Below are positions 20,901 through 52,600 of a stretch of 64,000 nucleotides of DNA, piece by piece. The notes beneath the pieces are model-generated. The model searched no databases. It was given only the letters and a program-made list of their open reading frames with translations, and was not told the DNA's origin. The stretch comes from Macrostomum lignano (lineage: Eukaryota): positions 1-64,000 of the forward strand of contig NIVC01001938.1 of assembly GCA_002269645.1 (NCBI GenBank), in the 5' to 3' direction. Positions within the stretch are counted from its first letter, which is position 1; each line of letters opens with the position of its first letter. Both the position numbers and the translations under genes were made by a program.

Positions 20901-21772
20901 ACCAGGGGCGCCAGCACCAGGGGCGCCAGCACCAGGGGCGCCAGCACCAGGGGCGCCAGCACCAGGGGCGCCAGCACCAGGGGCGCCAGCACCAGGGGCG
21001 CCAGCACCAGGGGCGCCAGCACCAGGGGCGCCAGCACCAGGGGCGCCAGCACCAGGGGCGCCAGCACCAGGGGCGTCAGCACCAGGGGCAATTCTAGCAC
21101 CGGGGTGTCAGCACCAGAGGCGTCAGCACCAGGGGCAATTCTAGCACCGGGGTGTCAGCACCAGAGGCGTCAGCACCAGGGGCAATTCTAGCACCAGGGG
21201 CGCCAGCACCAGGGGCGCCAGCACCAGGGGCATTTCAGAGAGTTAATACAACGATATTTGTTTCTACAACAGAGGTTTTCTGTTGGAAAATGCTACATGC
21301 AGGATTTGTAGGTTGACATGCGGCTCGCATTGAACCACTTCCAGGTGAGGACCTACTTCCGGGTGCAAAATACCTCGCCTACGACTCCAAGCGCAGCATA
21401 TTATTCGTCTCGGCCTCTAGCGAGTCCATATTGCGCTGCTACAAGTTTGAGCCTCACCAGCTCAACAGGATGAGCACCCAGTCGCAGGGTGTCACCTTGA
21501 CGGCGTCCGGCACGACGACTCTGACCGGCCTTTCCTCGCCCGGATTAGTCGCCGCCGCGATGCTCGGCGCTGTTGAGAAGGCCAACATCGAGCCGCCAAT
21601 GCCCAGGCTGACTAAATTGGCCGACTTTCTTGTTGGCAATCGCCAGCCAACTTTGCGAGCTTCCGGGCCGCAGTGCATCATGTGGGACCCGGACATGGAG
21701 CACCTGGTTGTGCTGTGCCACTCGCATATTAAGGGCAAGTTTAAAAACAAGATTTTCCGAGTGACGCTTTAA
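17981..21772 (+). CDS. Multi-exon hypothetical protein with beta-propeller (NHL/YVTN-like) blades; approximate exons 17981-18328, 18662-18899, 19769-20060, 21345-21772
   Basis: Phase-compatible GT-AG exons encoding blade-like segments SSYYIYGTNLELNCVLRF, QYLFVSNLDAGICVF, AKYLAYDSKRSILFVS and CIMWDPDMEHLVVL. Confidence 0.5.
18376..18650 (+). repeat. Dispersed intronic repeat, copy 1 (related to 52321-52590)
   Basis: Shared blocks GATTCACA...GAGGG.CAA.TCC..AAGGCACAGAGA...CACATGCCTGAC...GTGAGTG...GTACAGTATT. Confidence 0.5.
19180..19690 (+). repeat. Intronic minisatellite, ~23-31-bp units (AGTCAGGTCTACAGTGAAGTCTCGGGTCAGTC)
   Basis: Directly visible tandem array. Confidence 0.92.
20229..21232 (+). 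repeat. 15-bp GC-rich minisatellite (GCACCAGGGGCGCCA)n
   Basis: About 1 kb array, homogeneous core with variant units at the edges; intronic. Confidence 0.97.
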
Positions 21773-30198: not shown

Positions 30199-31857
30199 TA
30201 ACTCTAAGTGAATTTAATTCTCGTAATCACTTCTTGTCCGGTTTGGTGAGAGGCACCAGATACTAAGTTATAATGACTAGATTGATTGGAACGCTAATTC
30301 CCTTTGCGAGAAAACAACTGTTACTACTCACTATTCAGTAGCAAGTTTTTAATTAGTAAGTATTTTTCTATGATAATTGTTAGATATTTAAAGACGTTAA
30401 ACTCAGGGCAATAGAAATGTACATTTATTTGGCTGGGCAGATAGTCAACCCCAGGACTGTCAAACTGGCGCAATAGAATGGACGGTAGAGAAGGTTAGAG
30501 AAAATATTTAGGTCGATATCAGGCTACCAGGGAAATGTACACTTGTTTATCGAAGGAAATAATGTAAGATATCTACATTCCAGACCTAGTAAAATAAAAT
30601 TAGGTGGGGAGTGGTTTTATCACCCACTCGTCAGTTTGCAATGTACATTGCTTAGCCCCTAGAACTGATAAACTGATAAAAATAGGGGCAGAAAAGAGAT
30701 CAAGATCAAGAGAGTGAGAGATCATGCTACTTATTAGAAAGTAGTACAGTTGAATAATAATCACATATTGCTTGCGATCTGATCTTATCTAGTTGTTAAT
30801 TAGTATCTGTGGTAAGAATTGAGCTCTATGTTGCTATATGTGTACTGTTATAAGTAGAACCCCGCGCAGAGATACATACATGCCTTTTTGATTGCTTATC
30901 AAATTTCTGCTGTTTTCTTAACATGATTTTTGGTTATTTCGGATCGCTCCTATGCTTTGTTCCTACGCTATTCAAGTTGATTTCTCACAATTCTACTTAC
31001 AGTAGGATGCATACGCAAATTCTTGGTAAAACTTGGGTTTCCATTTTTCTTCTAAACTGCTTTTGGCGTTAGTATAAGTCAAAAAAGGTTTTTTCTAAAC
31101 GTTCTACCTGTATGCCTTATTGTTAGTCAGTGGTTCAATTCCTTGTTCATTCACCTGGGTACTTAGGCTGTCATATAATATTAATCTCTTTTGGCCTACA
31201 TTCGCATGGGATTTGCCTAATATAAGTATCTATTATTGTTAGCAATACGAGAAAAAATTCATGCGACTATCCAATCTGCAATATTGTTTAATTAAATTTG
31301 AATCTTCGGCCCAAGGTGTGTATTATCTAACAACTGTGTCTCTGTCTATTCTATTACTTAATATGTTCAACTATACACTGTTGCAACCTACAGCTTGTCA
31401 ACTTATTGCCAAAATCAATTCTGTATAAATATAGCATTACAATTGGATTGGTATTTGAGTACTATTAGTACTACTACATATAAGCGAAATTGAAATCAAA
31501 TAAGCAGGGCCTATTATACTATACATTTAGTTGCCACACGCTTGCTGTCCCAGCTAACCCAGTCAATATTGCTGTCATAACAGAATCACTCGATATGTTG
31601 TGCATTTTCCTCTTTTAGTTGGCCCCATATCGCATGTGTCAAAGCCACTACTATGGACAGCAGCTCGTTATGCCATGGATAGGAAACCAATGATTACACG
31701 CGCAAAAATATAAGTTAACAGGTAGTTGAATCTACCTGCTATAAAAGGACGTCGTATTCATGTACTCATAGCTGAATTTGTTATCATGTGCTCAAATTCT
31801 AACAGAGTCGTTGTTGTTATTGAATTTTATTTTAATTAAATTTTTGAAATCAGTCTT

Positions 31858-32975
31858 TGACACAAATATGCTGTCAATGTTTAACATATTTGCTGTCAAT
31901 GTTTGAAATATTTGCTGTCAATGTTTGACATATTTGCTGTCAATGTTTGACATAAATGCGTTGTCAATGCTTGACACAAATGTGCTGTCAATGTTTGACA
32001 TAAATGCGTTGTCAATGCTTGACACAAATGTGCTGTCAATGTTTGACATAAATGCGTTGTCAATGCTTGACACAAATGTGCTGTCAATGTTTGACATAAA
32101 TGCGTTGTCAATGCTTGACACAAATGTGCTGTCAATGTTTGACATATTTGCTGTCAATGTTTGACATATTTGCTGTCAATGTTTGACATAAATGCGTTGT
32201 CAATGCTTGACACAAATGTGCTGTCAATGTTTGACATAAATGCGTTGTCAATGCTTGACACAAATGTGCTGTCAATGTTTGACATAAATGCGTTGTCAAT
32301 GCTTGACACAAATGTGCTGTCAATGTTTGACATATTTGCTGTCAATGTTTGACATATTTGCTGTCAATGTTTGACATAAATGCGTTGTCAATGCTTGACA
32401 CAAATGTGCTGTCAATGTTTGACATAAATGCGTTGTCAATGTTTGACATAAATGTGCTGTCAATGTTTGACATAAATGTGCTGTCAATGTTTGACACATT
32501 CTTGCAATGTTTGTCACGAATGCGCTGTCAATATTTGACAGAAATACGCTGTCAATATTTGACACAAATGCGCTGTCAATGTTTGACACAAATGCGCTGT
32601 CAATGTTTGACATAAATGCGCTGTCAATGTTTGACACAAATGCGCTGTCAATGTTTGACACAAATGCGCTGTCAATGTTTGACACAAATGCGCTGTCAAT
32701 GTTTGACATAAATGTGCTGTCAATGTTTGACATAAATGTGCTGTCAATGTTTGACATAAATGTGCTGTCAATGTTTGACACATTCTTGCAATGTTTGTCA
32801 CGAATGCGCTGTCAATATTTGACAGAAATACGCTGTCAATATTTGACACAAATGCGCTGTCAATGTTTGACACAAATGCGCTGTCAATATTTGACACAAA
32901 TGCGCTGTCAATGTTTGACAAAAATGCGCTGTCAATGTTTGACACATTCTTGCAATGTTTGACACAAATGCGTTG
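31858..32975 (+). repeat. ~24-bp intergenic minisatellite (TGTCAATGTTTGACACAAATGCGC-like) with higher-order variants
   Basis: Directly visible; explains the many repetitive ORFs at 31896-33021. Confidence 0.95.
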
Positions 32976-33676
32976 TCAAGCTCTACTACATTTATCCTTT
33001 CCTCTTCGGATTAGCTCGTAATTAATCCCCATTCTAAATGATCTACTGTCGCTTATTGTCTAAACCGTGCCTTCTCTCACATTTTTCATTAGTCAGTTTT
33101 GAAGATGGAAGCTATAACGTGGGTAAACGCTAATTCTGACACAGTTTCTCAGTTTATTTCAGACTTGTGCAGCAGGCAGGCAGCCGCATTAGCTGTATAC
33201 AAACCTGTGGCTTAAATTATACCAATGAAAATGCTAGCTTGAACGCTATAGCATGCAGTTGAATTTGCATGTACAGACACGCACATACATGTAGCTTTAA
33301 TGTACTCTGGGATAGGGATGCACAGTGCCGCACGGGGCGCAGAGATACAGTTTTCTAACCTTTGAAATCGAACCATTTCGTATAAGTTTACACGCTCGTA
33401 GTTAGCTATTTAGCAAAATAAACAATCTTCATCAGTTTGATGCCCATAATGCCAACCCTTGCCACTCTGCGTTTTAAACCTGATAGTTAACTTTGATACC
33501 GCGTATATGGCTGCTTAACATGGCTATAACATGTGAACTCTCATTGCTTATAACAGCCGCAGATAGACAGCTTTACATAGCTTAGTCGACCACAATGAAG
33601 TTTGCCATGCAGTTGAAACTTCACTAAGCACCAATAAAGTACTGTTAATAAATACTGCAAAACTGCGCGACAACAC

Positions 33677-36600
33677 ATGATGCAACAGGATGCGGAAGTT
33701 TCCTATCGACGCAGTCAGCTTAACGAAGGGTTCGAGTCCCGACCGATGCAGACCATGCACAGGGATCAGCCGGCGTATTGCGACTTTGAGCAGGGCTCCG
33801 AGCACTCAGATGACGGTGAGTTGTTACAGTATATGTATATGACTTAGGATACACGACTACACGTAAAAACAGGCAATTTGTCTTCAAGTATTAGACTTCC
33901 TAGATTTCTAGCAATCTATACTATTTCCTGAATCAGTGTTAGATAGATTACCAATCCCTTTGTCTATCTATTCAATGTACTTCCTGACTTAAACAAGGAT
34001 AGATAAGCAATCCGTTTCTAAGCTCGTCAGTTAGCGTTTATGGAGATTAACTAACTTTTCACTGTTAATTAAAAACTTCGAACGCCACAATTCGCAGATG
34101 AATTCGACTGCGGCAGCAGCTGCTCGAGCCTTGGCGACAGGCTGCAGCGGATGCGGCCAATCAGCTGCTCGCCCCATCTGCGCCAGTTCGATCGGCACCG
34201 ATTCGAGGCGCACAACTGGCGCCTGCTGACCATGCGGGCGTATCGCCGGCTGCAGAGCACCGCTGACGGTGTGCAGCGCCTGGTGGGCGGTCCGGCCTCC
34301 AGCGGCGGCAGTGGCGGCAGAGATGCCGCTTCGGCGGCGGCGTCCAGCGGGGCGGCGGCGAGCTTCAACGGCTGGATAACGAAACCGGAGAGTGCGGGAA
34401 TCACGGCAAGCTTTGGCTGCCACGCGAAACCGGTGGGTTGGCAGGTTGGCTTTTTTATTTGCTACATTTCGTCAGCACATCAACTAGCCTCTAGCCTGCT
34501 GGCGCTTCTGGTGCTGGTGCCTCTGGTGCTGGCGCCTCTGGTGCTGGCGCCTCTGGTGCTGGCGCCTCTGGTGCTGGCGCCTCTGGTGCTGGCGCCTCTG
34601 GTGCTGGCGCCTCTGGTGCTGGCGCCTCTGGTGCTGGCGCCTCTGGTGCTGGCGCCTCTGGTGCTGGCGCCTCTGGTGCTGGCGCCTCTGGTGCTGGCGC
34701 CTCTGGTGCTGGCGCCTCTGGTGCTGGCGCCTCTGGTGCTGGCGCCTCTGGTGCTGGCGCCTCTGGTGCTGGCGCCTCTGGTGCTGGCGCCTCTGGTGCT
34801 GGCGCCTCTGGTGCTGGCGCCTCTGGTGCTGGCGCCTCTGGTGCTGGCGCCTCTGGTGCTGGCGCCTCTGGTGCTGGCGCCTCTGGTGCTGGCGCCTCTG
34901 GTGCTGGCGCCTCTGGTGCTGGCGCCTCTGGTGCTGGCGCCTCTGGTGCTGGCGCCTCTGGTGCTGGCGCCTCTGGTGCTGGCGCCTGGTACCTCTGGCA
35001 ACTCGCAATCCCCAATCTCGAAATGTTTTAGCTCATCTGACACCCCCACTCCTCAGGTGCTGATGGTCTGCGGCGCTCCAACGAGCGGCAAGTCGACTCT
35101 AATTAACAGCCTAATGGGCCGACGAGTTTTGCCAGTCCGTTTCGGCCAGGAGGACAAGGGCGTCATCAGGATTGTCTACTCTCAGAGGTGAACTATTTTT
35201 CGTTAATAGTACTGTGAAAACTTTGACTGATCTCAAAGACAAATGATTACAAAAGATGATCGCAAAGTAATTAAGCATGTAGAGTTGAGTTCCTAATTAA
35301 TATCAAGAGTCTGCTCTTCTAGTCAGATTCGTAACCACGTGACACTTCACGCAGGTTTTACGTCAGCTACCGGGGACTCAATTTGAACTCGGACTCGAGC
35401 AGCGACAACGGGAGCAGCAACAACGCGAGAGGCTGTCCAGAGCTGGCCAATCTTGTCCGAGGCTTCATACACGACCGCATGAACGAAGAGGAACGACAGG
35501 AATGGTCGTCGCTGAAGGAGAACTGCTGGCTCGAGATCGGCGTTGACTGCCCGCTGTTGCAGAGCGGCTTTTCAATCATGGAGGTGCCGGAATGCCTGCG
35601 AGAAGACTTCCTGCTGTCCATTCTCAATCAGCAGGAGCAATCGCTCTACCAGACTCTGGTGTTCATGCTGGATGGAATGAACGGCATTTCTCAGATGGTA
35701 CGCAAAGTCGGAGTTCGGTGATGGGGGGGAGACCGCACCCTGGATCTCTTGGTCTATCCATGTCAAACACATTACGGTAGCGATCAGTAACACAACCGTG
35801 GCTAAGCAAACTGTGAACAGTAAATAGTCTAGTCACTTTATTCCGTGATTCAGTCTGAATTATTGAATTTGTATGCAAAGCACTGACCTTGTTCGATTTT
35901 TTACTGAAGATGCAATCATCATTGTATTTTGACTGGTGACGCTTTCAAAAAATAACGATCCTTTAAACGATGCTGTATGATATAAACAATAACTAGGATG
36001 TGATATCCTTACAAAATATCCTTACACAGTGTGTAAAACAGACATGACTTTCTAATCGTCTGACATGTACACTCTCTGTGCTGTGGGGTTTGGCCGGTAT
36101 TCTCATACAGTCAAGTGTCAAAAGAATAAGATTCGACTAGAAAAAATTCCAACAGAAATGGGAAAGTCAGACTCTGTGTACACGATATTTATTTCGAAAA
36201 TTGGTTGAAACAGAGTTCGTGTTTTCAAATTTCGAACAGTATGAAATCTATCTTGTTTGCATCAAGAAAGATGGCGCACGGAAATACGTGAAGCTTGCAT
36301 TGTTTGAGCATATTTAACATCCGGCGAAAGCTTACCCATTTCCCCAAATTTTAAATCGTCCTCCAGGTTCGCGAGTTCCTCCTCCGCCTGAAGAATCAGT
36401 GCACCAACCTGAACATCTTGTACGTGATCAACAAGATCGACTTCAATCCGGAGGCGTTGAAACGCGACGAAGCTGAGCCCGGCTCCGACTCCGACGACGA
36501 TGACTCCGACGAGTCCGAGAACTTCTACGAAGACGATGACGACGAGTCTCTGCGTAAAAACTTCTCAAAAGGTCGCTTGCTCGAGGAGAACAATGCCAAA

Positions 36601-39600
36601 CGCGCTTTGAACATACTGACGAAGACCCTGGGCCTGCAAGGATTCCAGGGACTACCGGACCGCGCGGTCCTTGTATCGCTGCTTCGCTGGAACGTTCCAC
36701 TGAAAGAGGTCAGTCCGGAGGTTGCCGAAAGGAACCAGCTGTACAAGCAGCGGTACAAAGAGCTGGAAGCCGAGCTGGATGGCATGCTGCGCGCCAGAGA
36801 GATGGGCGTGTTCCACCTGTCAGCTGAGATGCTGCGAACTGCCTCCATGCGTCTGTATCGCTCCTTCACGGCTGGTCATCGACTCTTACACCCGGAGGGT
36901 CAGCTCAACAACCAGGAGGCGCTCAATCAGCTCACCAGCGAGACTAAGAAAATTTTCCGAGAAGTTTGGCAGTACATGAAAGACAAAAGGCGCAGCTTCG
37001 TGTTCACCGTTGATCAAGTCTACCGGCGGGAGAAGCAAGATATTATTGATTGGTGCGTCGACCAGCCAATGTCTGAGGACGGCTCAACAGACGAAGCTGC
37101 AAAGAAGGAACGCATCACTCAACTGGTGCAGGACCTGGTGGTGCGTAGACTGCAGAGTCGCTTCGAGGAATTGCTGCGAGCGCCGCTGCAGGTGAGCGCG
37201 GAACTTCCACGAATGGTGAAGCAACCCTCACAAAATACATGCAAGTCAAGAATAGTCGCTTTATAGCGCTATACTGATGAAAGCACTTAAGTAGTGCAAG
37301 GTTGAACTAACATCAAAATGGTATTGCCAACAATGGAAGTATATCGTAATTCAGTTACGAGTGCTTATAATGTTCTGAGGCTATAACTGTCAACATTTCG
37401 CTAATTCGGCATTCTATATTAATATTCGGAAGCAGGTGACTGAGTTCGTGATCTAGGAGTACCTGGGCTTGGGAAAGTGACTTGACTCAGCTGCAGGGGG
37501 TTCCGAGCATACGGATACAGCGAGGGAGGCGTTGCCGCCTATTCCGTTAACCTCCGGCGAGCACCGGTAGCTCCTGTTGCGGTGTCGCGCAGGGAGATCA
37601 ATCCAGTGGCGCCGGTGTCCGCAGCGCGTTCCCCATCCGGAGAGTTCAGGAAGTGGATGGTCGCTCGCCCGGTAGCTCTTAGGCCTGAAAATCTCGGGCC
37701 TGAAAACGTTGGAGAGATCCAGGTTTGGGTCGAGGTAGGTGAGCCTGTGTCTTAAGTGAAGAAGTGAAGACGGGGCATTCACAGATGAAGTAGTGCTCCG
37801 CATTCTCAACACCGGAGAGGCAGAATGAACATTCTTCCCTATGGATTTTCCCTGGAGGTAGCGATGCCCTTGAGAAAGTGAAAACACCGATGAAGTTGAT
37901 GACTTCAATAATATTCTTACAATAAATTTTAAGTCAGTTTGAACTAAGATTCAAACAAAGAGCGATGGCATGCACTCTCAAAGCATGTACAACTTCTCGA
38001 ATTTCGAAAAACATCTATTTATTCCATCGGTGTCTCCTCAGTGAGAGTTTCAGATTCAACGTTTCAAACCAAAATACAACACAATTCAGGACATTCGTCA
38101 AACCCTGCTGGAGAAGCTTAGCGAACTTCAAGCCCGGATCTGCAGCCTGAGCTATTGCCAGCAAACAGCTCAGATGCTCGGACAATCGGTAGCCGACAAG
38201 GCTTCTCACGGCATCAGCCAGTTGGCCCAGCTCACCTTGAACGTACAGATTCGACGGCGACCCACTCGCCTGCTCAGCGTTGTTCGATTCTTTCGCGGCG
38301 CAGCGGACAAACTTGCCCGGCCGGCCGGCGGCAAGGAAGCCGCGCTGACTGGCCGAGAACTGATCCGGTCGCTGGCCGAGACCAGCTACGATTCTATTGA
38401 AGTCAACTGGATGACCCAGCGACTGTTTCACGAGGCTGAAGATCGACTGCGCCAGACGGAGGCCACGATAATGGGCATTGTGACCAGCCGGCTGCAGCAC
38501 AACAGCGGCCTGCAGAAACTGCTGGCCAGGTAAGCCGCAAACGGGCAGGTGATACAAGTACAGTTAATTGAATGAATAAAGGAAGTTTTACTTTTCTAGC
38601 AATTTGACCCCGTTGAAAACGTTACCGTGACAAGAATCGCTAAAGAACCATTGCAAACCAATCACTAGTGACTCTAGCGACTCTTGTAACTTTTTAACGA
38701 CTTAAACGACCGTAATTCAATGCAAAAGCAACGTGAATTATGGAACTGTAAAAGAATCGCGAAAAAGTCGTCCCAGAGTCGCTGTGTCAGCGCTTAACTT
38801 TCTACTAACTCAAGTAGACTGAATGGAGTTGTTATAAATGCAAAATGCGATTCTAATTCATCACGTGACGCAGCTGCGCTTTAGACGCAACTCAGTGATT
38901 CTACGGTGACTCTAGCACGCCTCAGATACGACTCTACGGCCCCATAGTCATTACAGAAGCGTCCCAGTGCCTTTCAGAGTAGCACACAATAAAGCGTCTC
39001 AAATTGACTCTTAGGCGACTCTTTGACGACTTTTTGGCGACTTGTACTGTGAAATCTCGTCGTTTTAGAGTCGTCTAGAGTCACTTATACTCAGCAACAG
39101 TCAAAAGTTCCACCCCACTAAGCGAGATGATTTTTTCACTTATTGCGAGTGACGCAACCTACGGCACGCGCAAAGCTTATTGCCGCTTCGGGGTGGCTTG
39201 GGTCTGCTTAATGGTCCAGGCCTGGACATTAAGCAGACCCAAGCCCAGGAACAACGCCCCGCCACACCAAGCCGATGCTGTTAGTCAACTGAAGGAACAG
39301 CTACAGCTGCGCACTCTGCGCTGGCCTTCCCGGTCCCCAGACATGAATCCCATCGAGCATGTCTGGGACTTCCTAAAACGTAGCATTCGAAAAGAGAATC
39401 CACCATAGAATGTTGCGGAGAGTTCTGCGTCATGCCATTGAAAACGCTTCGGAGCGGCTTCCCCAGGACTTTCTGCGCCGCCTCATCATTGGGATGCCCC
39501 GCAGAGTCGTCGCACTTCTGTGTGCGAGGGGATCCCACACGCATCGCGATTCTAACTGAATATTGCATTAAAAATTTATGATTTTACTACGAGTATTGAT

Positions 39601-42253
39601 AGTCAATCAACTTTCCCTTCCTCGCGGCGGCTTAGTTGTGTAACTTGAGGGTTGAATTGTCAGTGTGAAGTTTTCGCAATTTGGAGGGTGGAACTTTTGA
39701 CTGTTGCTGAGCATATTTCCTATTTTACCCCTGTTACCTGCAGCGACTCTGGGGCGACCCAAGTGACTCTGGGACGCTTCTTGGCCTGGGTACCGTTTTC
39801 ACCGGGGACTGACTTGGTTAGTGTAAAATTGGGTTGGGGTTAGGGTTTAGGATGAAGGAAAAATCGGAAAATTTTCAAACTGACAGTTAGGCCAGAAAAA
39901 TAGGATAAAAATATCTTTTCTGCTAGAAAATATGAGTATTAATCTTCAGATCCGCACCAGAGGCTCTCCGTCTGTGGCAGGACGCTCAGCTCTGCGTGGC
40001 AGCGGCAGACGGTCTGGTAAACGTTGCCAGACACGGACCTCTACGCCTGGAGACCGACTTGGAGCTGCTAAATTCCGAGGGTGCGAATGGTTGGCTTATT
40101 TTAATCTTTTTCTCCTTTCAACTTGTCTTCTGGGGCTATTCTCTTGCTTCAGTTGATACGTACAGCCACTGTGAAGTTATTAACCCTTCACTTTCCAGAG
40201 AATCGTTAGACTCGATGCTTAAATCCGTTATAGCAAGCATAGTAGCTTACCTATGTCGTGTCACCCGTTTCAGCCGAAGCCCCAATACAAGCTGGTTTGG
40301 GTCCGAGCTACAGGTTAGCTGCACCGTACGCTGGCTTCTCTGCTCACGAGCTGATTGCTACCGTCACCAGCCTGTGGGACTTCAACGACCAGTCCAACGG
40401 AGCAAAAAGCGACGAGGACGAGGCTACTCTGTCCCGCTGGCGCTCCAGCCTCGGTGGTCTGCTCAACCACCTGCTGTTGGTGAGTTCGACTCGAAGTGGA
40501 GCAGCCGCGGCGGCGACAGCGTCGGCAGGTTCGTCGGCCAGTCAGCATCGCGGTAGACACCTGGCGGTGACCAGACTGTTGACGTTCAGCGAGACCGGGC
40601 AGCTGTGCGCTCTGCACCTGCCTATCGGGGTGCCCATCTCACGGCTGTTGTCTAACTCGACAAGACTCACGGATGTTCAGGTGCGCTAAGACTTTGAGTA
40701 TCAGAGTGTGATTGAGTTGTAGTAAGTTAATTTACACTGCAGGCTATATTATACAAACTAAAGTAGTCGTCTTTACGGGTCTGCGAGAACTTGGGTCTAC
40801 GACTTGCGCGCCTGCCCTAAGTAGAGTTCCAGTTACAGCAACACAGGCGCAATCTACATGTACAAGGGGCTGTGACCGATGCCAGCTGATTAGGCTGAAA
40901 CAAGCTGCTTGTTTACCAACAACTATAAAAGTGCCTGTCGGGTGAACTTCTCGTGATCCCGTCTTTGTTAACACAGACCACATTTCAGGGTTTCTGGGTG
41001 TTTTTTAAGCATCTTTACAGTTATTTGCGTGTATAAAAAGCAAAGGCATTAAAAACATGTTTAAACAGCCTCATAAAACTCCAATCAAATCGGAACCGCC
41101 CAGACCTGCGAACTCATCGACGGCATGTGCGGCGCACTGGCCCAGCTGTCGGACTCTCTGCCGGCGTTTGCGTGTCGTTTCGACTTTTCCAAGCTGAAGG
41201 TGAGCTGTTGTAGCTTGTCAATTTTGAGTTTATCTTCGGTCATAATCAATAACACAGCGGTCCGAAGTGTCAAAAAACTTTATTTACATTACCGTGCCTT
41301 AATGTACAACTGACAATTTTTATTGTGAAATTCAAACATTGACGCTTCAAGTTTGCAATGTTCTGAGAAGCTTGTGGAGAAGCCCAATTTGAAATAATAA
41401 TTAAAATAGCTGATTACACCTTACACCTTCCCCAATTGGGCAAGATTTGCAACCGACAAGGCTGCGTACGGCTGTTCAGTCCAAGGACTGGGGGTCGCCA
41501 CACAGCCTCAATTACCCCAGCTAATGCTGGCACCCATTTTACAGCTGGGTGAACTGAAGCAATGCAGAGTTAAGTGTCTTGCTCAAAAACACACATTGTT
41601 CCAGTGGGATCAGGAATCAAACCCCTGACCTTTCAGTCGTGAGTCCGGTGCCCTAACCACTAGGCTTCAACCTCTACAACCCCTAAACGATAATGCAAAG
41701 TACACCAAAAAAACACGAACGTACAATGGTACCATTTACAGACTGGTTAAAGTTGTCTTGTACAATCGAAGCACATGTACATGTAGATTAGGTTTAATCT
41801 GTGTCCTTCTCTCCACATTCTCAGGTGCCAGTGCTGCCAGGCAATCGAGTGTCCGTAGTCTACAATCTTTTAGACGACCCCATCGATTTTGGCGGTACGC
41901 TGCCACCATCGTCAACCACGTCAACGGCGACTCTGTTGATACGAAACGGCAGTCACCATCAGCTACTGGACTGGGCCGTGGCGCTGCTATTGAAATCGAC
42001 AAGCTCGCTAGCAATTAGTAGTAATCGGACTCCTCAGGAGGTGGTGACGCCGGAAGAGCTGCAGAGTCTGTTAACTGCCAATATGACGGCCTCGGCTTCG
42101 ACGCGAGCAATTACGGAACGAAGAGAACGTCTCAAAGCCCTAGCCGCTGCTAGTGGGCGTACTCTGGCTATTAATGCTACTGCCTTGTACCAGAGAGCTC
42201 AGCAGGACGATCTTATTCAGGTGAAGCAGACGCTTTTTAACTTGATCGACTGA
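33677..42253 (+). CDS. DSTYK-like protein 1: dynamin-like G domain, helical region, degenerate kinase; exons ~33677-33815, 34098-34432, 35057-35187, 35355-35697, 36367-37191, 38054-38529, 39950-40080, 40274-40680, 41104-41199, 41825-42253
   Basis: P-loop VLMVCGAPTSGKSTLINSLMGRRVLP; LEIGVDCPLLQSGFSIMEVPE; LYVINKID. The C-terminal half is clearly paralogous to gene 2. All ten exons join in phase. Confidence 0.72.
34497..34990 (-). repeat. 15-bp minisatellite (AGCACCAGAGGCGCC)n, inverted relative of 20229-21232
   Basis: Plus strand (GGCGCCTCTGGTGCT)n, located in intron 2 of DSTYK-like gene 1. Confidence 0.97.
37587..37870 (+). repeat. Dispersed repeat, copy 1 (related to 48243-48480)
   Basis: Shared TGCGGTGTCGCGCAG...CCGCAGCGC...CGAGGTAGGTGAGCCTGT...CACAGATGAAG...GGTAGCGATG. 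Confidence 0.6.
38608..39807. mobile_element. Non-autonomous TIR element rich in GACTC/GAGTC motifs, interrupted by a Tc1 remnant
   Basis: Ends CCCCGTTGAAAACGTTACC and GGTACCGTTTTCACCGGGG are inverted repeats; TSD not resolved. Confidence 0.55.
39088..39713 (+). mobile_element. Internally deleted Tc1/mariner transposon
   Basis: TIRs CTCAGCAACAGTCAAAAGTTCCACCC / GGGTGGAACTTTTGACTGTTGCTGAG with TA on both sides; transposase remnant DNAPPH...WPSRSPDMNPIEHVWDFLKR. Confidence 0.9.
41410..41672 (-). mobile_element. tRNA-derived CORE-like SINE (copy 1)
   Basis: Reverse complement of the element at 43050 and 44372. Confidence 0.85.
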
Positions 42254-42365
42254 CTTACGACTAACCTTTAATATGAAGTAGTTTTACCGAGAGTAGGTAC
42301 GAAATAGATTGTGTTAGCGATGATCGAACGATAACTAAAGTACTCAGTTAGCTTACCCTTCTCAG

Positions 42366-45300
42366 GGATGAGCTTCCACCATACAATTCGACCTTACAGG
42401 AGCTGCGACTTCTCGTTCGTCGTGAATTGTCTGCCATCCGGACCGGCATCTCCACTGATCGAGCGGCCAAATCGGCGTCCACTTCGACAACGTCGGTTGC
42501 GACCAGTTCAACAGCTGCAGCCAAGCAAAGCCCGCTTGGCCGATGGGTCCGATTCGACAGACGCATGCGCTCAGTCAGAGAGCGAGCTCTGGCCTGGGCC
42601 TGCCAGCTGGACGACGCGTTGCCTGGTGTGGCCAGAGGCGATCAGAACCCGCTGCCGCCGCCTCCGCCGCCGCAGCAGCTGACGATGCAAAAGCCGGTAG
42701 GCATCGACGCTTCTCTACTGACAGGATCGCTGACTGGCTCGAGCACTTTGGCTAGTGCAGCATCCACTGATTCAGATGTAAGCGTTGAAGCCGTTTGCTC
42801 AATTCGTGCTACCAGGTTTTTCGTCAGAAATTTTGCTACCATTTTACCGAGTAAAAAATATTGAGCTAGCAACCGAAAATGATTGTCATAAATTCAAGAC
42901 GAAATCCGAGGTTTATGCCTAGAGTATCTCCTCGTTGTAGCGTAATATTAGCTCGTTTATATGATTGAATATTACCAAATAAAATCACGGAGAACGCAAA
43001 TAATGTCCCGGAAAAGCTTTATATCTATGATTAACTTTATATGTGATAAGGGGGTTGTAGCCAAGTGGTTAGAGCGTCGGAATTATGACTTAATGGTCGG
43101 GGGTTCGATTCCCGATCCCACTAAAAAATTTTGTGTCCTTGAGCAAGACACAATTAACTCTGCATTGCTTCAGTTCACCCAGCTGTAAAATGAGTGCCAA
43201 CATTAGCTGGGGTAATTGAGGGTATGTGTGGCCACCCCCCGTCCTTGGACTGAACAGCCGTACAATAGCTGCAGCTGAACTGTTGTCGGTTGCACATCTG
43301 TCCATTGGGGCAGGTGTAAATCAATTATTATTTATCATTATTCTAATGTGGCAAGACACTGACATAACGCCTTTGCCTAAACATTTCATTTGTTAGAAAC
43401 TCGGTTCAAACAGTAAGTAATTTGAGCACGAGTGTTCCTTAGTGGAGCATTTTTTCTTAGGTCTTGGAAGCTTTGGTGAGCATTTTTATCCAACGAGGAG
43501 TCTTCTCTTTATTGGTTTGTCATTTCTTTCAGTCGGCAGGTGGAGCCTCGCCCGTACTGGCAGTCACTGGCTGCTCCCGTCGCCTGCAGTTCGGCGTCAT
43601 CAATCGGCTGCTAAGACAGCGGACGCTGCCGCCAACCGACGAGGACGGCACCAGCAGGCGTCTTGGCGCAATCAAACTGCGCCACTCCGAGAGTCAGCGC
43701 CTCGACCTGAACAGGCGAGACCGGCCCTACTACCTACCGTTGAGAGCGGCGGCTGGGCCCGATGATAGCGACGAGGTCGACGTTGCCGAACAAGTCGATC
43801 GATTTGTCGACTCGCTTCCCGAAGACACGGCCACCGCTTGGACCAGCCTGACCTCCGACTGGCTCAGCGTCCAGATCGACAATCCCGTGCTGCGATCGGG
43901 CCTGACGCTGCTAGCGCCTCCGGAGCAGCTCGTCCGGCTGGGTCGCTACAAACTGTTGAAGTCGGCCGAACCGGTAGCGGTTCTCTGCGTGACTGAGGAG
44001 CCTCCGACTGTTAATGTGAGTGCAGGCTGTTTCGCTGTTCTGGGACCTAAATTTCACCATGTCTTGTTAATTACTGATACAGAGCAGCATAGTATTGCTT
44101 TCATAAAAATGTGTCACGCGGCGATTGTTAAAGTGTTAGTGTTAGAAACACCTTTAATATTTAAGTTTTTTATTGCTGTAGTTAAGCTCTCGCATAAATT
44201 TGCATAAAGACTGATTTCTGAGCTTTTAAGCTCGCGAGGTCCTTTGTGATGTTTCTAAGTATTCTAAGACACCACTAGCTACCAATAATCGATTTATAAA
44301 AGTATATAATGATAGCTGGAAAATATCATGTCGTCTAGATATCCATGTTTACATATAATATTTCCATCTAGAGGGTTGCAGCCTAGTGGTTAGAGCGTCG
44401 GACTCACGACTTGAAGGTCGGAGGTTCGATTCCTGATCCCACTCAGAAAAATGTATGTCCTTGAGCAAGACACTTAACTCTGTATTGCTTCAGTTCACTC
44501 AGCTGTAAAATGTTTGCCAGCATTAGCTGGGATAATTGTGGGTGTGTGTGGCGACCCCCAGTCCTTGGACTGAACAGCCTTCGGATGCGCCGCACAATAG
44601 CTGCGGCTGAGCTGTCAGTTGCACATCTGCCCATCAGGATAGGTGTAATTAATTTATTATTATCATTATTACAATCGATTTCAGCAAAAAAATTCCAAAA
44701 TAAAAATCCCCTTATCACAGGAGCTGCATCACCTGCTGTCTCTGCAAGTGAACTTGCCAAACGTACCCGTTCTGGCCGTCCACTGCAAACCGACCGTCGA
44801 TTCCATCAGCACAGAGCCTGGTACGGAGTCACCGCAACCGCTGCCCAGACCTCAACTGTCGGGTGCCGCATCGCCGGCGCCGAGGCTTCGACGAGCTCGG
44901 TACCGTCTGTCGCGCTTCTCAACCTCGGACGACTTCGACGAGGACACTGGCAGCAGCAGTTCGATTGTCAGCGAGACCCAGCTTCTACTGGACAAACGCT
45001 TAGATAGCCAGCAAATTCGCCGACTTGTCCTCCCGCTGTCCTGCGTTGTTGGCAGCGGCTTGTTCAACGAAGACGGCGGCGCTGCCACCGATTGCGTCGA
45101 CCCGATCAGCGGTGGCAGCTACGACGAGACCGTCGCTAGCGATTCTAGCCGGGACACGAGACTGGACGAGGCCGTTGTCGAACTATTAGCCGACGCTAAT
45201 AGATTTGAGTCGGATCAGAGCCTGCAGCGATTGCAGTCGGTTTCTCTGCGCTTGCTAGACTGCTTGGTGAGTAAACAGCGGTTGATTATCTACAGAAATT

Positions 45301-48135
45301 GCGTAAGCGTTGAATTTGCAGTCCAGACTCCAGTTTTCACAAGCTCCAAAAGTTTAAGACAATTTAAAATTTCGATATTATGAAGTTTCGAGCATTAAAA
45401 GTAACAGCCATTTTGATTTTTGACAGTAAAATATACACGTAATAAAACTTCAAGCTTGTGGAAATGATTAGCAATATTGTTTGAACTTCCGAGAGTATGC
45501 AGCATTGCTAGAAAAAAAGCTAGGAGGGACAAGGACTGGTTCTTCGATAAATTTCTCACTACGAGCGTACCATGGTAGTTTTCCTCGTAAGACTTCATAC
45601 GCATACCGGGAAATGATTTTTAAAATTACTTGCAATATCCGTCATCCCCTCATTCAGGTGCAGTCGAAAAACACCGAGTCGTTGGAGCTGCTGGCCACCA
45701 ATGCCGACCGACTAAAGACCCGCATTGCTGACGAATTCACAGATGCCAGAGCACGATTGGACTCGGAGAGGACTGACCTGCAGCGCCAATTGTCAGCTGA
45801 ATTGGCTACGATTCGGCCCCTGGTTCTGGACGATTGCGGCAGGGTACGACTAGACGATCATCATCATCAGCATCAGCAGCAGCAGCAGAACCAACAGCTG
45901 CACAAACGGCTGAATCAGGTAGGTTTTCTATGAGACCGATGTTGACGAAACTGAAGTAAAATCAGCCGCCTGGAAATTTAGCCTTGAGTAAAACTCCTAA
46001 CGGTAACTTGTCAGATATTGAAACGTTGCGGACATTCTATCAAGGTCCTTTTCTTTTGCTCCCAAGAGTTTCTATCGTCAACTCTGCCGAGAAGTTAATT
46101 GATTGCAGTCGGTGTGGTTTGAAGCTTAGCTGTAGGCTTCGTGCTTTAGTTGACGCATCCCCTTCATTTCCTTATACGCCCTCAAAATTCCAGACACTCA
46201 GCAATCCGATTCACGACGCGACTCTCCATCAGCGAGACACAGTTTGCAGAGCTCAAATCGAAGCCTGCGCTATCAGCACCTGCGCGGCCATCCTCAAACG
46301 AGCAGCCAGTGAGCTCGCTTCGTTGTACGAGAGTCGTCTAGCCGAGAGACTTTTGCCTGGCGACTTACCTGCAATGCTCTGCGGCCTGTCCAGTGAACGA
46401 GTGCAGCGAGTTTTGCAGCTTCACCTAGCTCGAGATGATTGGGATTCTACGCCGGTGCGATGGCAGGCTGCTAACCCGGGCGCAGACTCCTGCCTGCAGC
46501 TGAGCATTGGAAAGGTAACTACCGCAATCTGTACCTGTGATCTGTGAGCTCAAGAAACGAAATATTTAAAAAATACATTTCGCAGGACTGGAAGACGCTC
46601 ACCGCTGAGGAGACTCTCATGTCAATCGACATGGCGGGCAGCTCAAAACAGATACTGAAGGATCTCACCAGCCGACTTGAGGCTGCAGAGACAGCCGTTC
46701 TCAGTCTAGTCAACGACCGACTCCAGTATAGCCGACAGTTACAGAAACTTTTGGCCAAGTCCTCAACCGATGCCGCCCGTCTCTGGCAGGACGCTCAGCT
46801 CTGCGCAGCTGCAGCCGAGGCACTGTCGAGCGTTGCAAAGTTCGGCCCGCTGCGTCTGGCTGCGGACGGCGAAGGACTCGGCGAAAGTCGGCTGGGTCGG
46901 CGGTACCGGGTTGACGGGCTGTACGCAGGTTTGGCCGAACAGGACCAGCCCGTAGTTGCCACCGTCACCTGTCTGTGGGACTGCGGCGACGTTGCTGGCG
47001 CTGGCGGCGGTTCTGACGTTGACGAAGCCGCAATCGCTCGCTGGCGCAGTGGTCTTGGCGGCCTACTGAACCACCTGTTGCTGACCGGCGATGTCAGCCG
47101 TGGAAACTTGGCCGTGACGCGGCTTCTGACTTTCAACGACAAAGCTCAGCTGTGCGCGCTGCACGCTCAGCTAGGCAGACCGCTAGCTGACGTGCTCGGT
47201 GGCCCAGATCCTTTGACGGACGTTAGCGCCTGCGAAATTGTCGACGGCCTCTGCGGAGCGTTCGCGCAGCTGACCGAGTCCCTGCCTTCCTCGACGTGGA
47301 GTCTCGATCGCTCGAAGCTCAGCGTGAGATTTTTTAGTCAATTAGTTAGGTCGTCACTAGTCACATGTCAAGGCCCTGTGATGTGTATTGAAATCTAAAT
47401 AAGGAAGCGCCATTCCATATCCTGGGCCATTGTAAACGCACACCCATACAGATACACACACAGGTACGCATTTACACACGGAGACTTTATCATCGTCAGG
47501 AATCTACACGTTCTGTGCTTTGGGATTGATCCTCCTTTTTAAATGATCTGGGCTGGCCTGATATGGAATTGAACCGACACTTTGACGTAACAGTCAGAGG
47601 TCCTTGGTCTAGTTAGTTATGGGTAGCTAAGTCTTTGTTTTAAGACACACACCTTTCAGATATTAAAAAAAGATTTTGACTAACAATATAGGTCTGCGAA
47701 TGCGGCAGTAAAGTTCCGACCCGCAAGTTGCTACTATTTGACCTACTGCACGAGCCAGCAATCAACTTCAAAGCTATGATTGGCAAACCAAAGCGATCTA
47801 TGCTGAAGCATCAGGATGGAGGCGGTTCTCAATCTCAGCAGCATCACCTGATTCTACTGGACCTCAGTTTGTTAGTGCTGCTGTCGCCTGGAAACCCAGC
47901 AGAGTGCCGTCAGCTGCTGAACCTTGACGATCTCAAACTAAGACGATCTCGGATCAACAATCTTGCCAAAGTCGACACCAGCAAGCATGCTGTGGAGTCC
48001 AGCTTCTTATTGAAGCGTTTGATCAGTTTCTACCATGAGAAGCCGAACGAAGTCTGCGCTTCCATTGCCGCAGCCGTGAGGCGCGAGCTATCATATCGGC
48101 GTAACGGCGGTGGCGGCGGAACGTCAAAGGGCTGA
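42366..48135 (+). CDS. DSTYK-like protein 2: pseudo-GTPase, helical region, degenerate kinase; exons ~42366-42696, 43533-44015, 44721-45266, 45658-45918, 46194-46514, 46586-47323, 47728-48135; start unresolved
   Basis: PVLAVTGCSRRLQFGVINRLLRQRTLP, LSVQIDNPVLRSGLTLLAPP and DWKTLTAEETLMSIDMAGSSKQILKDLTSRL...EGLGESRLGRRYRV align by eye to DSTYK segments ([48 protein letters not shown]). Confidence 0.68.
43050..43340 (+). mobile_element. tRNA-derived CORE-like SINE (copy 2)
   Basis: A box TAGCCAAGTGG, B box GGTTCGATTCC, then GTGTCCTTGAGCAAGACAC...CACCCAGCTGTAAAATG and a TTA-rich tail. Confidence 0.88.
44372..44670 (+). mobile_element. tRNA-derived CORE-like SINE (copy 3)
   Basis: Same head, body and (TTA)n tail as 43050. 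Confidence 0.88.
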
Positions 48136-49676: not shown

Positions 49677-52600
49677 ATGAAAGTTGCATCACTGGCTCAC
49701 CTAGTCGCCATCAGTGAGGCAGCGAACAATCTGACAAGTAGTGTACGCAAGGAGCTCAACGCAGGCAAAGTGACCTCGAAGAAGACGCCAGAAAGGTCGC
49801 GAACGGCTGCTGTGGTTGTCAGCCTGCCAGTCTCTAGATGGGGAGAAGTTTTTGAAGCTATCCAAGTTAGTTTTTGTTTATTTACAGTAGTAAACGTCTT
49901 ATATGCTTTATCATGTTATATACGACCCAAAACTTCATTCCAGACTGCCAATGCAGCCATTGAAAAGGTTGAGTTTCGTTCGAAAAAGGGCGAAAATGGT
50001 ACTGCAACAGCGTCCGACCTGTTTGTGCAAATCTGTCTCCTAGAAGACACTGATACGTGCTCTTCGTCTGCGTTGCAGTTATTAAGTAGCTGCGGCAAGG
50101 AGGTGCGCTTTCTACATGACAGTCGTGACGTAGAGGGAGATAAAATGACAGGTACTACACTTTAGTCTCTTGACATATATATAAATAATTTGTTTCCCAG
50201 AAACCTTGCTCCAAAACTCGCTCACTTCAGTTGCCGACAATCCTTGGTTTCCGAAAAGCGTAGCCGATTTGGACATTGTGATTAACAGGGTTCTGCTTCT
50301 GGAGCAGATGAACGACGTTGATCATCCCGTGAGCCGATGCGCCTTTGAGGCTTTTGACTTTTATGACGATATTCTATTTTAATTGCAATTCATTGAACTC
50401 TTTCTGGCAGAGCATGCAAGACGAGCAGTACAAAACGCGAAGGAAAATGTTTGCCCAACTGGCCTTCGACTACAAGCACGACCAACCCATTCCGGTGGTG
50501 GACTACACTGAAGAGGAGAATCGAACCTGGTCCATCGTGTTCAACCGTCTGTGCGAACTCTACGATAAGCACGCTTGCAAAGAGTTCCTGGAGAACTTCA
50601 AGGAGCTGAGAGAAATCGGCCTGTACAGGTAGGAAGTTTGACCGGTTTCACAGATATCTGGCAGTGTTAGTTGTTTGCTAATCAACGCGACAAGTGGACC
50701 CAGCTAGCGAGATGGCAAATACTCGTAGTTATGCTTTTTCCGCCAAAGAATATCTAGACAGAATGTCCGATCGCGCATCAAGCTTGATATAGTAATCAAA
50801 CTATCATACTACTTTTGTGGTGAAGCAGATGAGTTGTTTACAAACAAGACTTGGTTGTATTACACATTATTGTATTAAACCGATGACTACGCTCGTAGTT
50901 TACAAATGTGCCTTGAGTGCGATACATAATTTCGCTATCAGTCTACGACTTGTGTATTAGAGCCGATGGTTTTGAAACGTGTCTTGAGTGCATTTGGGGT
51001 CTTTGGGGGTCTTTTGCGATGCTTATCGAAGGTTACTGCAGGGATTACTTAAACTTAAGTAGTCCCTGGGTTACTGTGTCAGTAGCCGTACAGTTTATTA
51101 GTAAGAGATTGTCTTTTCGGTACGTTGCAGCAGGAGAGTGGAGGGGGGAAGAGAGCAAAGAAGAGAAGAGAGTGGGGAACAGTAGCTAAGGGCACGCAGC
51201 CACCGCATCAGCCATGACGACTAGGGCCGGGAAAACGCCCGACCACCACAAACCGCCCCCAAGCCCCCAACAGCAGCTCAGAAAGGGATTAGGTGCTTTC
51301 CGCTAACACCTGAGCACACATCCACATAACAGAAGCAAACTCAGCCAAATACTCACACAGGTTTTACAGAGGCACTGATTTTCTAGTTGTTGTTGAGCGA
51401 TAGTCGGCCCTCATTAGCGAGAATCACGGAATCAAGACTGGACATTTAACGTGAGATTATGACGCGGTAATGGCTAAACTACTCTGGCCCCTATTAGCAG
51501 TGATAATGCCTACTTTTTATCAATAAATCAATAAATCTATAAATCTTTCACCCCGCCGCAGGAGCGACCGCATTCCGCAGCTGCGCGACGTCTCCGACTT
51601 TGTGAGACGCCGCTCCGGCTTTACGCTCCGTCCCGTCGCTGGCTACCTGTCTGCTCGGGACTTTCTTTCAGCTCTGGCGCTGAGGGTCTTCTGCTGCACT
51701 CAGTACATCAGACACTGGGAGAAGCCGTTCTATACACCTGAGCCGTGAGTTGCACAGATGAGCTGGACTTCTTCTCAATGGCTCCTCGCCTTGGATACTC
51801 ACCTGCTTTTACCGTTGGTTACAGAGACTGCTGTCACGAACTACTTGGTCACGTGCCAATGCTGGCAGATCCAACATTTGCGCACTTCTCTCAAGAGATC
51901 GGCTTGGCATCGCTCGGCGCGTCAGAGGAGGACGTCAAGAAGCTCGCTACGGTTAGTCAACTCAGCTATTTGATTGACCTCTTAGATGCACACTTGATTG
52001 TGCTACAAGCAGATGATAAAACGTGTGGCCTATCGTTCCTTATTAACGAATTTGATTTTTCAGTGCTATTTCTTCACCGTCGAGTTTGGACTCTGCAAGG
52101 AAGCTGATCAACTGAAAGTATACGGCGCTGGTCTACTGTCGTGCGTTGATGAACTTGTGGTGAGCTAAGTGGCATGCTTAACCTTATGCTTCATCAAAAT
52201 GAACAGAAAATGATTTTAAACCCATTTTAACGAGTACAGAGCAGTTTAGCGATAACTACGTCTGACTTGCACCAAGACAATCTGGTTTGATTCCTGTGCG
52301 GTCCCATTATTAGACCTGGGGTTGTCGCGAGATTCACAGCCATGAGGGACAAACTCCAAAGCACAGAGAGTACATGCCTGACCCTGTGTGAGAGCGTGTG
52401 TGAGTGCGGCCTGCGTACAGTATTGACGCGCTTGCATGTGCTCAGGAGCCAGTGGAATGGGCAGAATTGCTTCAGCGCCATTTGCGGGACGATGTCGCCG
52501 AAAACATTGCGCTAATGTGGTCGCAAGCCTCCTGCAATTAGCTCTTATTCTCATTATTAACGAGTCATGCCATGGATGTGTTCCTTAATACCAAGACTTT

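Follow-up and report, generated by a model that had tools for sequence, protein, structure and literature searches.

The 64,000-nucleotide stretch of contig NIVC01001938.1 of the flatworm Macrostomum lignano that we analysed (hereafter the window) carries, at 33677-48135 on the plus strand, an interval that is most likely one gene with two tandem modules and a main product of about 2137 amino acids (aa). Sequence and profile comparisons support the placement of both modules, here called unit 1 and unit 2, in the lineage of DSTYK and the dynamin-like proteins. Unit 1 keeps the P-loop of its G domain and unit 2 has lost it. The complete reading, which comprises one gene, a tandem duplication, a live and a dead module that are both under selection, and a product acting as a nucleotide-gated scaffold, seems to us fairly probable.

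The gene model was built from GT-AG splice sites and continuity of the reading frame, and the deposited protein PAA92483.1 was then threaded on the window to set the junctions. The result is a single open reading frame (ORF) of 17 exons, all bounded by GT-AG, with 6414 coding nucleotides encoding 2137 aa without internal stop. Its start ATG at 33677 and its stop codon at 48133-48135 delimit exactly the interval that an earlier, sequence-only reading of this DNA had singled out as a pair of adjacent genes on the same strand. All long plus-strand ORF pieces between 33.6 and 48.2 kb belong to two mutually similar series, and two same-strand paralogous units with a shared block are indeed found there: by tblastn, pieces of the unit-2 ORF match the unit-1 region with E values of 1e-17, 2e-11, 4e-8 and 4e-5, covering the block WQDAQLC / RWRS.LGGLLNHLLL / LAVTRLLTF / LCALH / CE..DG.CGA.AQL. 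Once spliced, the units share 32.5% identity across 855 aligned residues, and identity rises to 43-45% in the C-terminal ~340 aa (a blastp comparison with unit 2 as query and unit 1 as target gives E 8.5e-51); their paralogy is real and goes far beyond what chance would give. What has to be revised is the word genes, because the two are probably modules of one annotated gene, the one that encodes PAA92483.1.

PAA92483.1 (BOX15_Mlig031520g1, Mlig031520.g1; 1953 aa) has both units in one chain, and the spliced window protein is 98.5% identical to it over 1945 aa, gap-free. It is encoded at a homologous locus on NIVC01000051.1, a diverged copy of the interval in which aligned blocks are 92-99% identical and indels lie mostly outside exons; the window gene appears to be a diverged second copy of the GenBank gene BOX15_Mlig031520g1. 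The gene is already in GenBank as a hypothetical, 'Dynamin N-terminal domain-containing', uncharacterised protein, and no mention of Mlig031520 was found in the literature.

Kinship with DSTYK and the state of the domains

An exhaustive HMMER search with a two-unit profile against 1.84 billion cluster representatives matched 13 proteins: three are fragments of the window units, whose cluster also includes PAA92483.1, two are M. lignano paralogs and eight are others. The names of five of these eight were checked, and each is either called DSTYK or DSTYK-like by NCBI or is an unnamed relative from the nemertean Lineus. Cnidarians, brachiopods and hemichordates are the groups whose proteins bear this NCBI name. 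Searching by word index with the G-domain profile brought up nothing beyond short fragments and bacterial Der/Era GTPases. When the four M. lignano sequences were aligned with nine DSTYK-like proteins by hhalign, the probability was 100% and the E value 5e-41 over 629 columns, and the alignment begins in the helix that precedes the P-loop, covers the G domain and the entire stalk, and stops at the first residues of the kinase N-lobe. Full-length DSTYK-like proteins carry Pfam Dynamin_N plus Pkinase or PK_Tyr_Ser-Thr.

The DSTYK-like dynamin kinship that had been proposed from the letters alone is thus upheld, by the hhalign result and also by Pfam and by structure comparison. Dynamin_N matches unit 1 at 30.1 bits, above the gathering score of 27, over only profile positions 2-80 of 168; unit 2 gives no match to Dynamin_N in Pfam even at E ≤ 10, and would owe its dynamin membership only to its paralogy with unit 1. 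The AlphaFold2 (AF2) model of unit 1, made from a 13-sequence alignment, has a mean predicted local distance difference test score (pLDDT) of 59, rising to ~70-85 in the greater part of the G domain and stalk. Its best Foldseek match is the bacterial dynamin-like protein BDLP (2j69), with an E value of 5.8e-12 over 707 columns, and further matches are IniA, SynDLP, the Campylobacter dynamin-like protein (DLP) pair, Drp1, the mitofusins MFN1/2, EHD and dynamin; unit 1 models as a dynamin fold of the BDLP/mitofusin type, in which the G domain is followed by helical neck and trunk bundles.

The motifs of the two G domains have diverged to different degrees. In unit 1, G1 reads GAPTSGKS (35072-35095), G4 reads NKID (36430-36441) and EVPE (35581-35592) stands at the G3 position, while the G1 position of unit 2 reads GCSRRLQF (43569-43592); all four strings, and with them the loss of the P-loop in one unit only, had been correctly noticed before. 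Beyond this, unit 2 also lacks G3 (APPE, 43914-43925) and G4 (HCKP, 44781-44792), and the switch-I Thr is lost from both units (EDKG in unit 1, GTSRRLG in unit 2). The DSTYK-like relatives have G..N[SC]GK[ST] at G1, PCT[SA]R at switch I, mostly D[STA]PG at G3 and mostly NK.D or NK.E at G4; from the alignment, the Thr of PCT[SA]R is presumably G2. Unit 1 therefore matches G1 GxxxxGK[ST] and G4 [NT]KxD and has neither the G2 Thr nor G3 DxxG, and unit 2 has none of G1, the switch-I Thr, G3 DxxG and G4. The M. lignano paralogs also lack the switch-I Thr and have Glu at the position of the G3 Asp (PCNG with EIPG; CQAG with EVPS). Because these two changes are common to the paralogs, they predate the tandem duplication.

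Judged by what is generally known of P-loop GTPases, unit 1 could bind a guanine nucleotide but would do so without the canonical switch and catalytic residues, and would be at best a binder and not an evident GTPase; unit 2 would be unable to bind nucleotide. The nucleotide-binding G domain that had been claimed for unit 1 stands as far as the P-loop and NKID are concerned, and does not stand for the canonical G2 and G3.

The two paralogs, Mlig003289 (PAA75049.1, 1076 aa) and A0A1I8IN21 (UniRef, a 746-aa fragment), belong to the same divergent subfamily as the units. They share with them the C-terminal blocks LQKLLAK, LGG..NH.L, TFN and LC.LH, the absence of the switch-I Thr, the Glu at the G3 Asp position and the lack of a Pkinase match. 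Mlig003289 differs in having a single module, in keeping the Gly of G3 (EIPG) and in matching Dynamin_N over its full length, at 35.4 bits. In trees computed from BLOSUM-score distances, units 1 and 2 and the two paralogs form a clade in 100% of bootstraps; in the N-terminal tree unit 1 groups with Mlig003289 (70%), whereas identity in the C-terminal domain favours unit 1 with unit 2. The subfamily is fast-evolving and Macrostomum-restricted, in that no other species was found among its members in the HMMER search.

In invertebrate DSTYK-like proteins the elements follow one another as they do here: a helix at the N-terminus leads to a G domain of the dynamin type and, past G4, to an acidic patch, and then come a long stalk and the C-terminal domain. 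These proteins share with the M. lignano proteins the signatures E[IV]G[LV]D.P[LI]L..G, YVIDG and NK.D.D..A..MD. They consist of one module of ~850-930 aa, against two modules in the 2137-aa M. lignano ORF, and they have an intact G1, PCT[SA]R, mostly D.PG at G3 and Pfam Pkinase matches. In the M. lignano protein a kinase profile is not detectable, the switch-I Thr is missing and Glu replaces the G3 Asp. In the proteins of Nematostella, Lingula, Lineus and hemichordates G1, G3 and G4 are intact, and several of them are without the standard VAIK, HRD and DFG motifs: YRD occurs only in the two hemichordate proteins and a DFG-like tripeptide in none. The combination of a nucleotide-binding G domain with a dead kinase had been presented as an inverse state; it is no peculiarity of this locus, for many invertebrate DSTYK-like proteins likewise join degenerate kinase motifs to a G domain that is intact. 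A live-looking G domain next to a doubtful kinase is, from these motifs, the usual invertebrate condition, already present in databases under the DSTYK name, and the DSTYK family may have begun as dynamin-type GTPases that carried a divergent kinase. In the open-access literature we found no paper that treats the non-kinase part of DSTYK as a dynamin-like GTPase, nor one that deals with the state of intact G domain and doubtful kinase.

For the human protein we used what we take to be the sequence of DSTYK, and the comparison serves as a lead only. The invertebrate profile aligns with residues 104-891 of this presumed sequence (probability 99.96%, E 5.5e-39), with G domain, stalk and kinase collinear. 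At the P-loop position it presumably reads GQDCNVKC, degenerate like unit 2, and we take it to combine HRD and DLG motifs with a dead G domain. The earlier statement that the P-loop of vertebrate DSTYK is degenerate agrees with this presumed sequence only, and keeps the rank of a lead. The two units alone align marginally with the same sequence (hhalign, E 0.05, in the P-loop region). In PMC11933320 human DSTYK is described as an active kinase that, for example, phosphorylates STING. Vertebrate DSTYK (RIPK5, 'Dusty') differs in this from the M. lignano protein, where neither module has recognisable kinase motifs, and also in that one of the two G domains here still has the P-loop and NKxD.

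At the place of the DSTYK kinase domain each module ends in a C-terminal domain of ~340 aa, which the sequence-only reading had called a pseudokinase. This name is not demonstrated. Pfam Pkinase and PK_Tyr_Ser-Thr do not match units 1 and 2 at E ≤ 10, nor Mlig003289 and the protein P0005 at E ≤ 0.1; hhalign finds no profile similarity between the C-terminal domain and the kinase domains of DSTYK-like proteins (E 0.44); and a PDB profile search with the domain returned no kinase. VAIK-like, HRD-like and D.K..N patterns are absent from unit 1, unit 2 and Mlig003289, in agreement with the claim that the kinase motifs are missing, except for DFG: this tripeptide occurs literally in unit 1, at aa 970-972 (IDFGG), but is not conserved, the same position being NFK in unit 2 and TFG in Mlig003289. 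The absence of Pfam, profile and PDB matches, together with a mean pLDDT of 44 in the AF2 model of the domain alone (mostly 30-60 in the full model), is what one would see if the domain were unrelated to kinases, or had replaced one, and 'pseudokinase' were a misnomer; this explanation, which is compatible with one gene of two modules, we find doubtful.

What argues for a pseudokinase is the position of the domain in the architecture, together with weak fold hints. Outside the domain, the protein is collinear with DSTYK-like proteins as far as the point where their kinase N-lobe begins. The predicted elements of the domain, in the order three strands, a helix, two strands, a short helix, a long helix, two short strands and helices, fit the kinase fold by our own reading. 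When the model was made from an alignment of M. lignano sequences only, with no kinase among them, 50 of the 50 best Foldseek matches were protein-kinase domains, although with E values of 0.04-0.2, a template modelling (TM) score of ~0.2 and a mean pLDDT of 44; the search with the whole module found the EphA2 kinase at E 5e-3, and as its alignment held kinase-bearing homologues this match may be biased. We consider it likely that the C-terminal domain has a kinase-derived fold.

One gene or two, and selection on the modules

In the PAA92483.1 model the two units are joined by a splice from a donor at 42778 to an acceptor at 43533, both in phase 0. The donor, GAT/GTAAGC, is of the consensus type, the acceptor reads TTTCAG/TCG, and both are kept in the second copy of the locus. 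Without this donor the frame runs into a stop 28 codons further on, at 42862-42864. Unit 2 is without Met in its first ~300 residues, and the 669 bp that separate this stop from unit 2 consist for about a third of a repeat resembling a short interspersed nuclear element (SINE). For a two-gene model, a first exon or a start codon of unit 2 was sought in 42865-43532, and none was evident. GenBank shows a single gene across the homologous locus. The Mlig_3_7 annotation was built from RNA-seq transcripts by StringTie/TACO/TBONE, with ORFs called by TransDecoder (PMC5730564); because the deposited model is transcript-derived, the cis-spliced junction has RNA support, and no mRNA boundary is called between the units in that model. 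The earlier division into two genes is thus probably wrong. Likewise, the hetero-oligomer of separate proteins that had been envisaged would be first of all an intramolecular pair, since the units form one annotated gene. The defence role that had also been suggested finds no support in these data.

The units have introns in common positions and phases, or within a few residues of each other. Unit-2 exon 16 is the counterpart of the end of exon 6 and of exons 7 to 9 in unit 1, where it is divided by three introns. As far as sequence can tell, this shared structure shows that exons 3-11 were duplicated in tandem inside the gene, at the genomic level, to give the two modules, and that the linker intron, which joins the end of module 1 to module 2, is a duplicated copy of the ancestral intron just upstream of the P-loop exon.

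The second copy on NIVC01000051.1 has the same splice dinucleotides and exon lengths in 17 of 17 exons, save a 1-bp gap in exon 16: there (16563-17303 of that copy, corresponding to window 46586-47323) it carries a 1-bp deletion, and the window copy is intact. Because of this deletion the C-terminus of PAA92483.1 is premature (...PLGRPLATCSVAQII); it may stem from faulty assembly, or be a mutation that truly disables that copy. Nei-Gojobori counts between the window copy and the second copy give a ratio of non-synonymous to synonymous change (dN/dS) of 0.19 overall, from 58 synonymous and 34 non-synonymous changes; the ratio is 0.13 in unit 1 and 0.34 in unit 2. Synonymous changes are in significant excess in each unit, with a p of 2e-13 in unit 1 and of 0.0013 in unit 2 (18 vs 18 changes, on 709 and 2078 sites). 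By these counts both modules are under purifying selection, with unit 2 less constrained than unit 1.

Several points weigh against the reading of the interval as one gene for a two-module scaffold. The inter-unit junction rests on the deposited, transcript-derived model and on sequence logic, and a separate unit-2 mRNA is also possible. In a two-gene operon the unit-1 mRNA would end by means of the AATAAA at 42978, which lies 114 nt past the read-through stop, and unit 2 would be expressed by spliced-leader trans-splicing at 43533, with the terminal AUG of the leader as its start codon; the live and dead modules would then be separate polypeptides. The M. lignano spliced leader, CGGTCTCTTACTGCGAAGACTCAATTTATTGCATG, does end in ATG (PMC8629364), and when joined to 43533 it continues in frame as MSAGGASPVLAVTG... 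(M-SAGGASPVL...). Moreover, the 669 bp from stop to acceptor, largely repeat, are within the repeat-adjusted 1-kb operon limit for this species, in which an estimated ~15% of genes are in operons (PMC8629364). On the side of selection, the unit-2 G domain alone shows 5 synonymous vs 3 non-synonymous changes, too few for a test. The kinase origin of the C-terminal domain is a hint from low-confidence models, without profile, Pfam or PDB sequence support; and nucleotide binding, localisation and a contact between the G domains of the two modules are all inferred.

Against an operon stands the deposited TBONE-processed model, which derives from transcripts, is not cut at this place and is cis-spliced across it. 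The consensus donor GTAAGC lies upstream and in phase, a situation in which cis-splicing is favoured over trans-splicing by a rule quoted in PMC8629364, and both splice sites of the junction are conserved in the second genomic copy. We regard the two-gene operon as unlikely; the strong in-phase donor and the uncut model argue for cis-splicing as the main route, and both products may exist. That unit 2 is a decaying and functionless duplicate, carried along in the transcript or attached to it by faulty annotation, so that only unit 1 matters, is very improbable: unit 2 is without G1, G3 and G4, evolves faster (dN/dS 0.34 vs 0.13), forms the long branch in the N-terminal tree and belongs to the part of the protein that the exon-16 deletion truncates in the deposited copy, but it has kept a 930-codon frame open across six exons despite 32% identity to unit 1, the two genomic copies agree in all its splice sites and exon lengths, the units are most alike in their C-terminal domain (43-45%), the lone 1-bp gap could be a mistake of a PacBio-era assembly, and because its synonymous excess is significant it is no decaying relic.

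Exons, repeats and neighbours

Unit 1 and the region before it occupy the first eleven exons. Exon 1 (33677-33815) corresponds to aa 1-46 of PAA92483.1 and ends at a phase-1 donor, GTGAGT; exon 2 (34098-34432) encodes the N-terminal region before the G domain and recurs in two fragment proteins, P0002 and P0017. The P-loop is in exon 3 (35057-35187), the switch II region with EVPE in exon 4 (35355-35697), and exon 5 (36367-37191) contains NKID, the acidic patch and the beginning of the helical stalk, which continues in exon 6 (38090-38529), helical in the model. The C-terminal domain begins in exon 7 (39950-40080) with WQDAQLC at 39975-39998. It proceeds through exon 8 (40274-40680), with RWRSSLGGLLNHLLL at 40435-40479 and LAVTRLLTF at 40561-40590, and exon 9 (41104-41199), with CELIDGMCGALAQL at 41107-41148 and CRFDFSKLK at 41173-41199; exon 10 (41825-42220) holds its second half, including the literal DFG. 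Exon 11 (42400-42777) encodes the tail of unit 1 or a low-complexity linker and ends at the donor at 42778.

The inter-unit intron (42778-43532, 755 nt) contains the read-through stop, the AATAAA and the SINE-like repeat at ~43050-43270, and ends in ...TTTCAG at 43532. Unit 2 begins with exon 12 (43533-44015), which has no Met codon and encodes the degenerate G domain with GCSRRLQF and APPE; exon 13 (44721-45266) holds HCKP and the beginning of the stalk, and its junction ...LLDCL/VQSKN is confirmed by the fragment protein P0003 and by PAA92483.1. The stalk extends over exon 14 (45658-45918) and exon 15 (46194-46514), where the fragment protein P0001 begins. Exon 16 (46586-47323) comprises the end of the stalk and the C-terminal domain, with WQDAQLC at 46784-46807, RWRSGLGGLLNHLLL at 47039-47083, LAVTRLLTF at 47108-47137 and CEIVDGLCGAFAQL at 47231-47272. 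Its junction with exon 17 (47692-48135), which encodes the second half of the domain and the stop codon, reads ...SKLS/VCECGSK and is confirmed by P0001 and P0014.

Composition, long introns and interspersed repeats mark the window as part of a eukaryotic genome, and protein matches, exact or nearly so, identify the species as M. lignano. Intron 2 contains a noncoding tandem array of 32.7 copies of a 15-bp unit (34497-34987, Tandem Repeats Finder), which is in frame with the P-loop exon, yet missing from PAA92483.1 and from P0002 (...HAKP joined directly to VLMVCG); it holds an open frame of LAPLV repeats and could mislead ORF-based annotation. The 15-bp unit, TGCTGGCGCCTCTGG, and its complement form two long arrays in opposite orientation, at 20179-21144 and 34497-34987. 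A 24-bp / 188-bp satellite array (~48 and 6 copies) lies at 31856-32979, ~700 bp upstream of exon 1, and the same array, different in length, is also found at the second copy of the locus. The SINE-like repeat occurs in three introns, including the inter-unit one (43050-43270, plus strand; 41465-41671, minus; 44465-44578, plus), and by our own reading has tRNA-type A- and B-box-like motifs (GTGGTTAGAGCG ... GGTTCGATTCC); ARAGORN and Rfam, run over 30-50 kb, called neither this repeat nor any RNA. Intron 6 contains, at 39127-39408, what we read as the remnant of a Tc1/mariner-type transposase ORF (...SPDMNPIEHVWDFLKR...).

Further from the gene, a cluster at 6053-11698 resembles a large DNA mobile element and may be Polinton/Maverick-like. 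On the minus strand, ORFs at 6053-8577 have motifs such as DTDS that we read as of the protein-primed PolB type, and their only Pfam match is Endonuclease_7 (5.7e-5, just below the gathering score); an rve integrase core at 10786-11175 on the same strand is also below its gathering score (4.9e-5), and on the plus strand the ORF at 11207-11698 encodes a Phospholip_A2_4 domain of the parvovirus type (1.1e-13). The upstream neighbour at 24826-26505 encodes a protein with TPR and DnaJ, DNAJC3/p58IPK-like by our own reading. Downstream, 50345-50632 and 55780-56022 are near-identical exon copies of a biopterin-dependent aromatic amino acid hydroxylase (Biopterin_H 5e-24), ~5.4 kb apart, which hints at a local duplication on this side of the gene. 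An exon for a fibrinogen C-terminal domain lies at 60879-61256, also downstream.

A possible nucleotide-gated scaffold

Dynamin-like proteins act through nucleotide-dependent contacts between G domains. Module 1 would bind guanine nucleotide and hydrolyse it poorly or by a non-canonical route, and module 2 would be a nucleotide-free pseudo-GTPase. Because dynamin-like proteins work through contacts of G domain with G domain, the covalent pair of a live and a dead module would be a built-in asymmetric dimer, in which the occupancy of the single nucleotide site could set the conformation of two stalks and of two degenerate C-terminal domains. Such a protein would serve as a nucleotide-gated scaffold or sensor and not as an enzyme, and would probably act on endomembranes, for which DSTYK offers a precedent on endolysosomal membranes.

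The best structural matches of module 1, the BDLP/mitofusin types (Nostoc BDLP 2j69, IniA 6j73, SynDLP 7zw6 and MFN1/2; E 5.8e-12 to 1e-6), are only ~12-15% identical to it in sequence. They have complete G1-G4 motifs and hydrolyse GTP, and they are without a domain at the C-terminal position of the kinase; in the M. lignano protein no hydrophobic paddle or transmembrane segment was identified. Two bacterial systems resemble the M. lignano protein in architecture. DynA of Bacillus subtilis has two DLP modules in one polypeptide, with nucleotide-binding motifs in both G domains, and DLP1/DLP2 of Campylobacter jejuni (5owv), a Foldseek match to module 1 at E 2.7e-8, are an obligate pair. Like the M. 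lignano protein, they combine two diverged and cooperating dynamin-like modules, either fused or paired; they differ in being bacterial and in having no C-terminal domain at the kinase position. The likeness is architectural and independently arrived at, not one of descent.

A wider reading can be offered tentatively, and we think it rather less than probable: a nucleotide-binding, probably non-hydrolysing dynamin-like module would be fused to a fully motif-dead copy of itself, each with a kinase-derived domain devoid of catalytic residues, so that the protein would be a nucleotide-gated scaffold of a single site with up to four pseudoenzyme domains and an animal counterpart of DynA, and DSTYK would ancestrally have been a dynamin-type GTPase plus kinase whose two activities can be lost independently. 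Should the fusion not be confirmed, the locus would simply be a case of an uncharacterised family expanding in one lineage.

DSTYK is a human disease gene, connected with urinary-tract malformations and with the spastic paraplegia SPG23 (PMC10492769). Its invertebrate relatives carry a complete dynamin-type G domain, and the flatworm lineage appears as the extreme of the family, with a kinase that is unrecognisable and a tandem module in which one nucleotide site is kept, the other lost, and both modules are selected. What seems specific to this locus, by the comparisons made here, is that the module was duplicated within the gene and that the second module, without nucleotide motifs, is yet under selection; that one protein joins a nucleotide-binding module to a motif-dead one is unusual and, to our knowledge, undescribed. 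In M. lignano both RNA interference and transgenesis exist (PMC5730564). If the fusion is true, the gene would be a tractable case for the study of the dynamin-like part of DSTYK without kinase activity and of pairs of live and dead G domains; on the wider reading, it would also be a natural experiment on the independent loss of the two activities of the DSTYK family.

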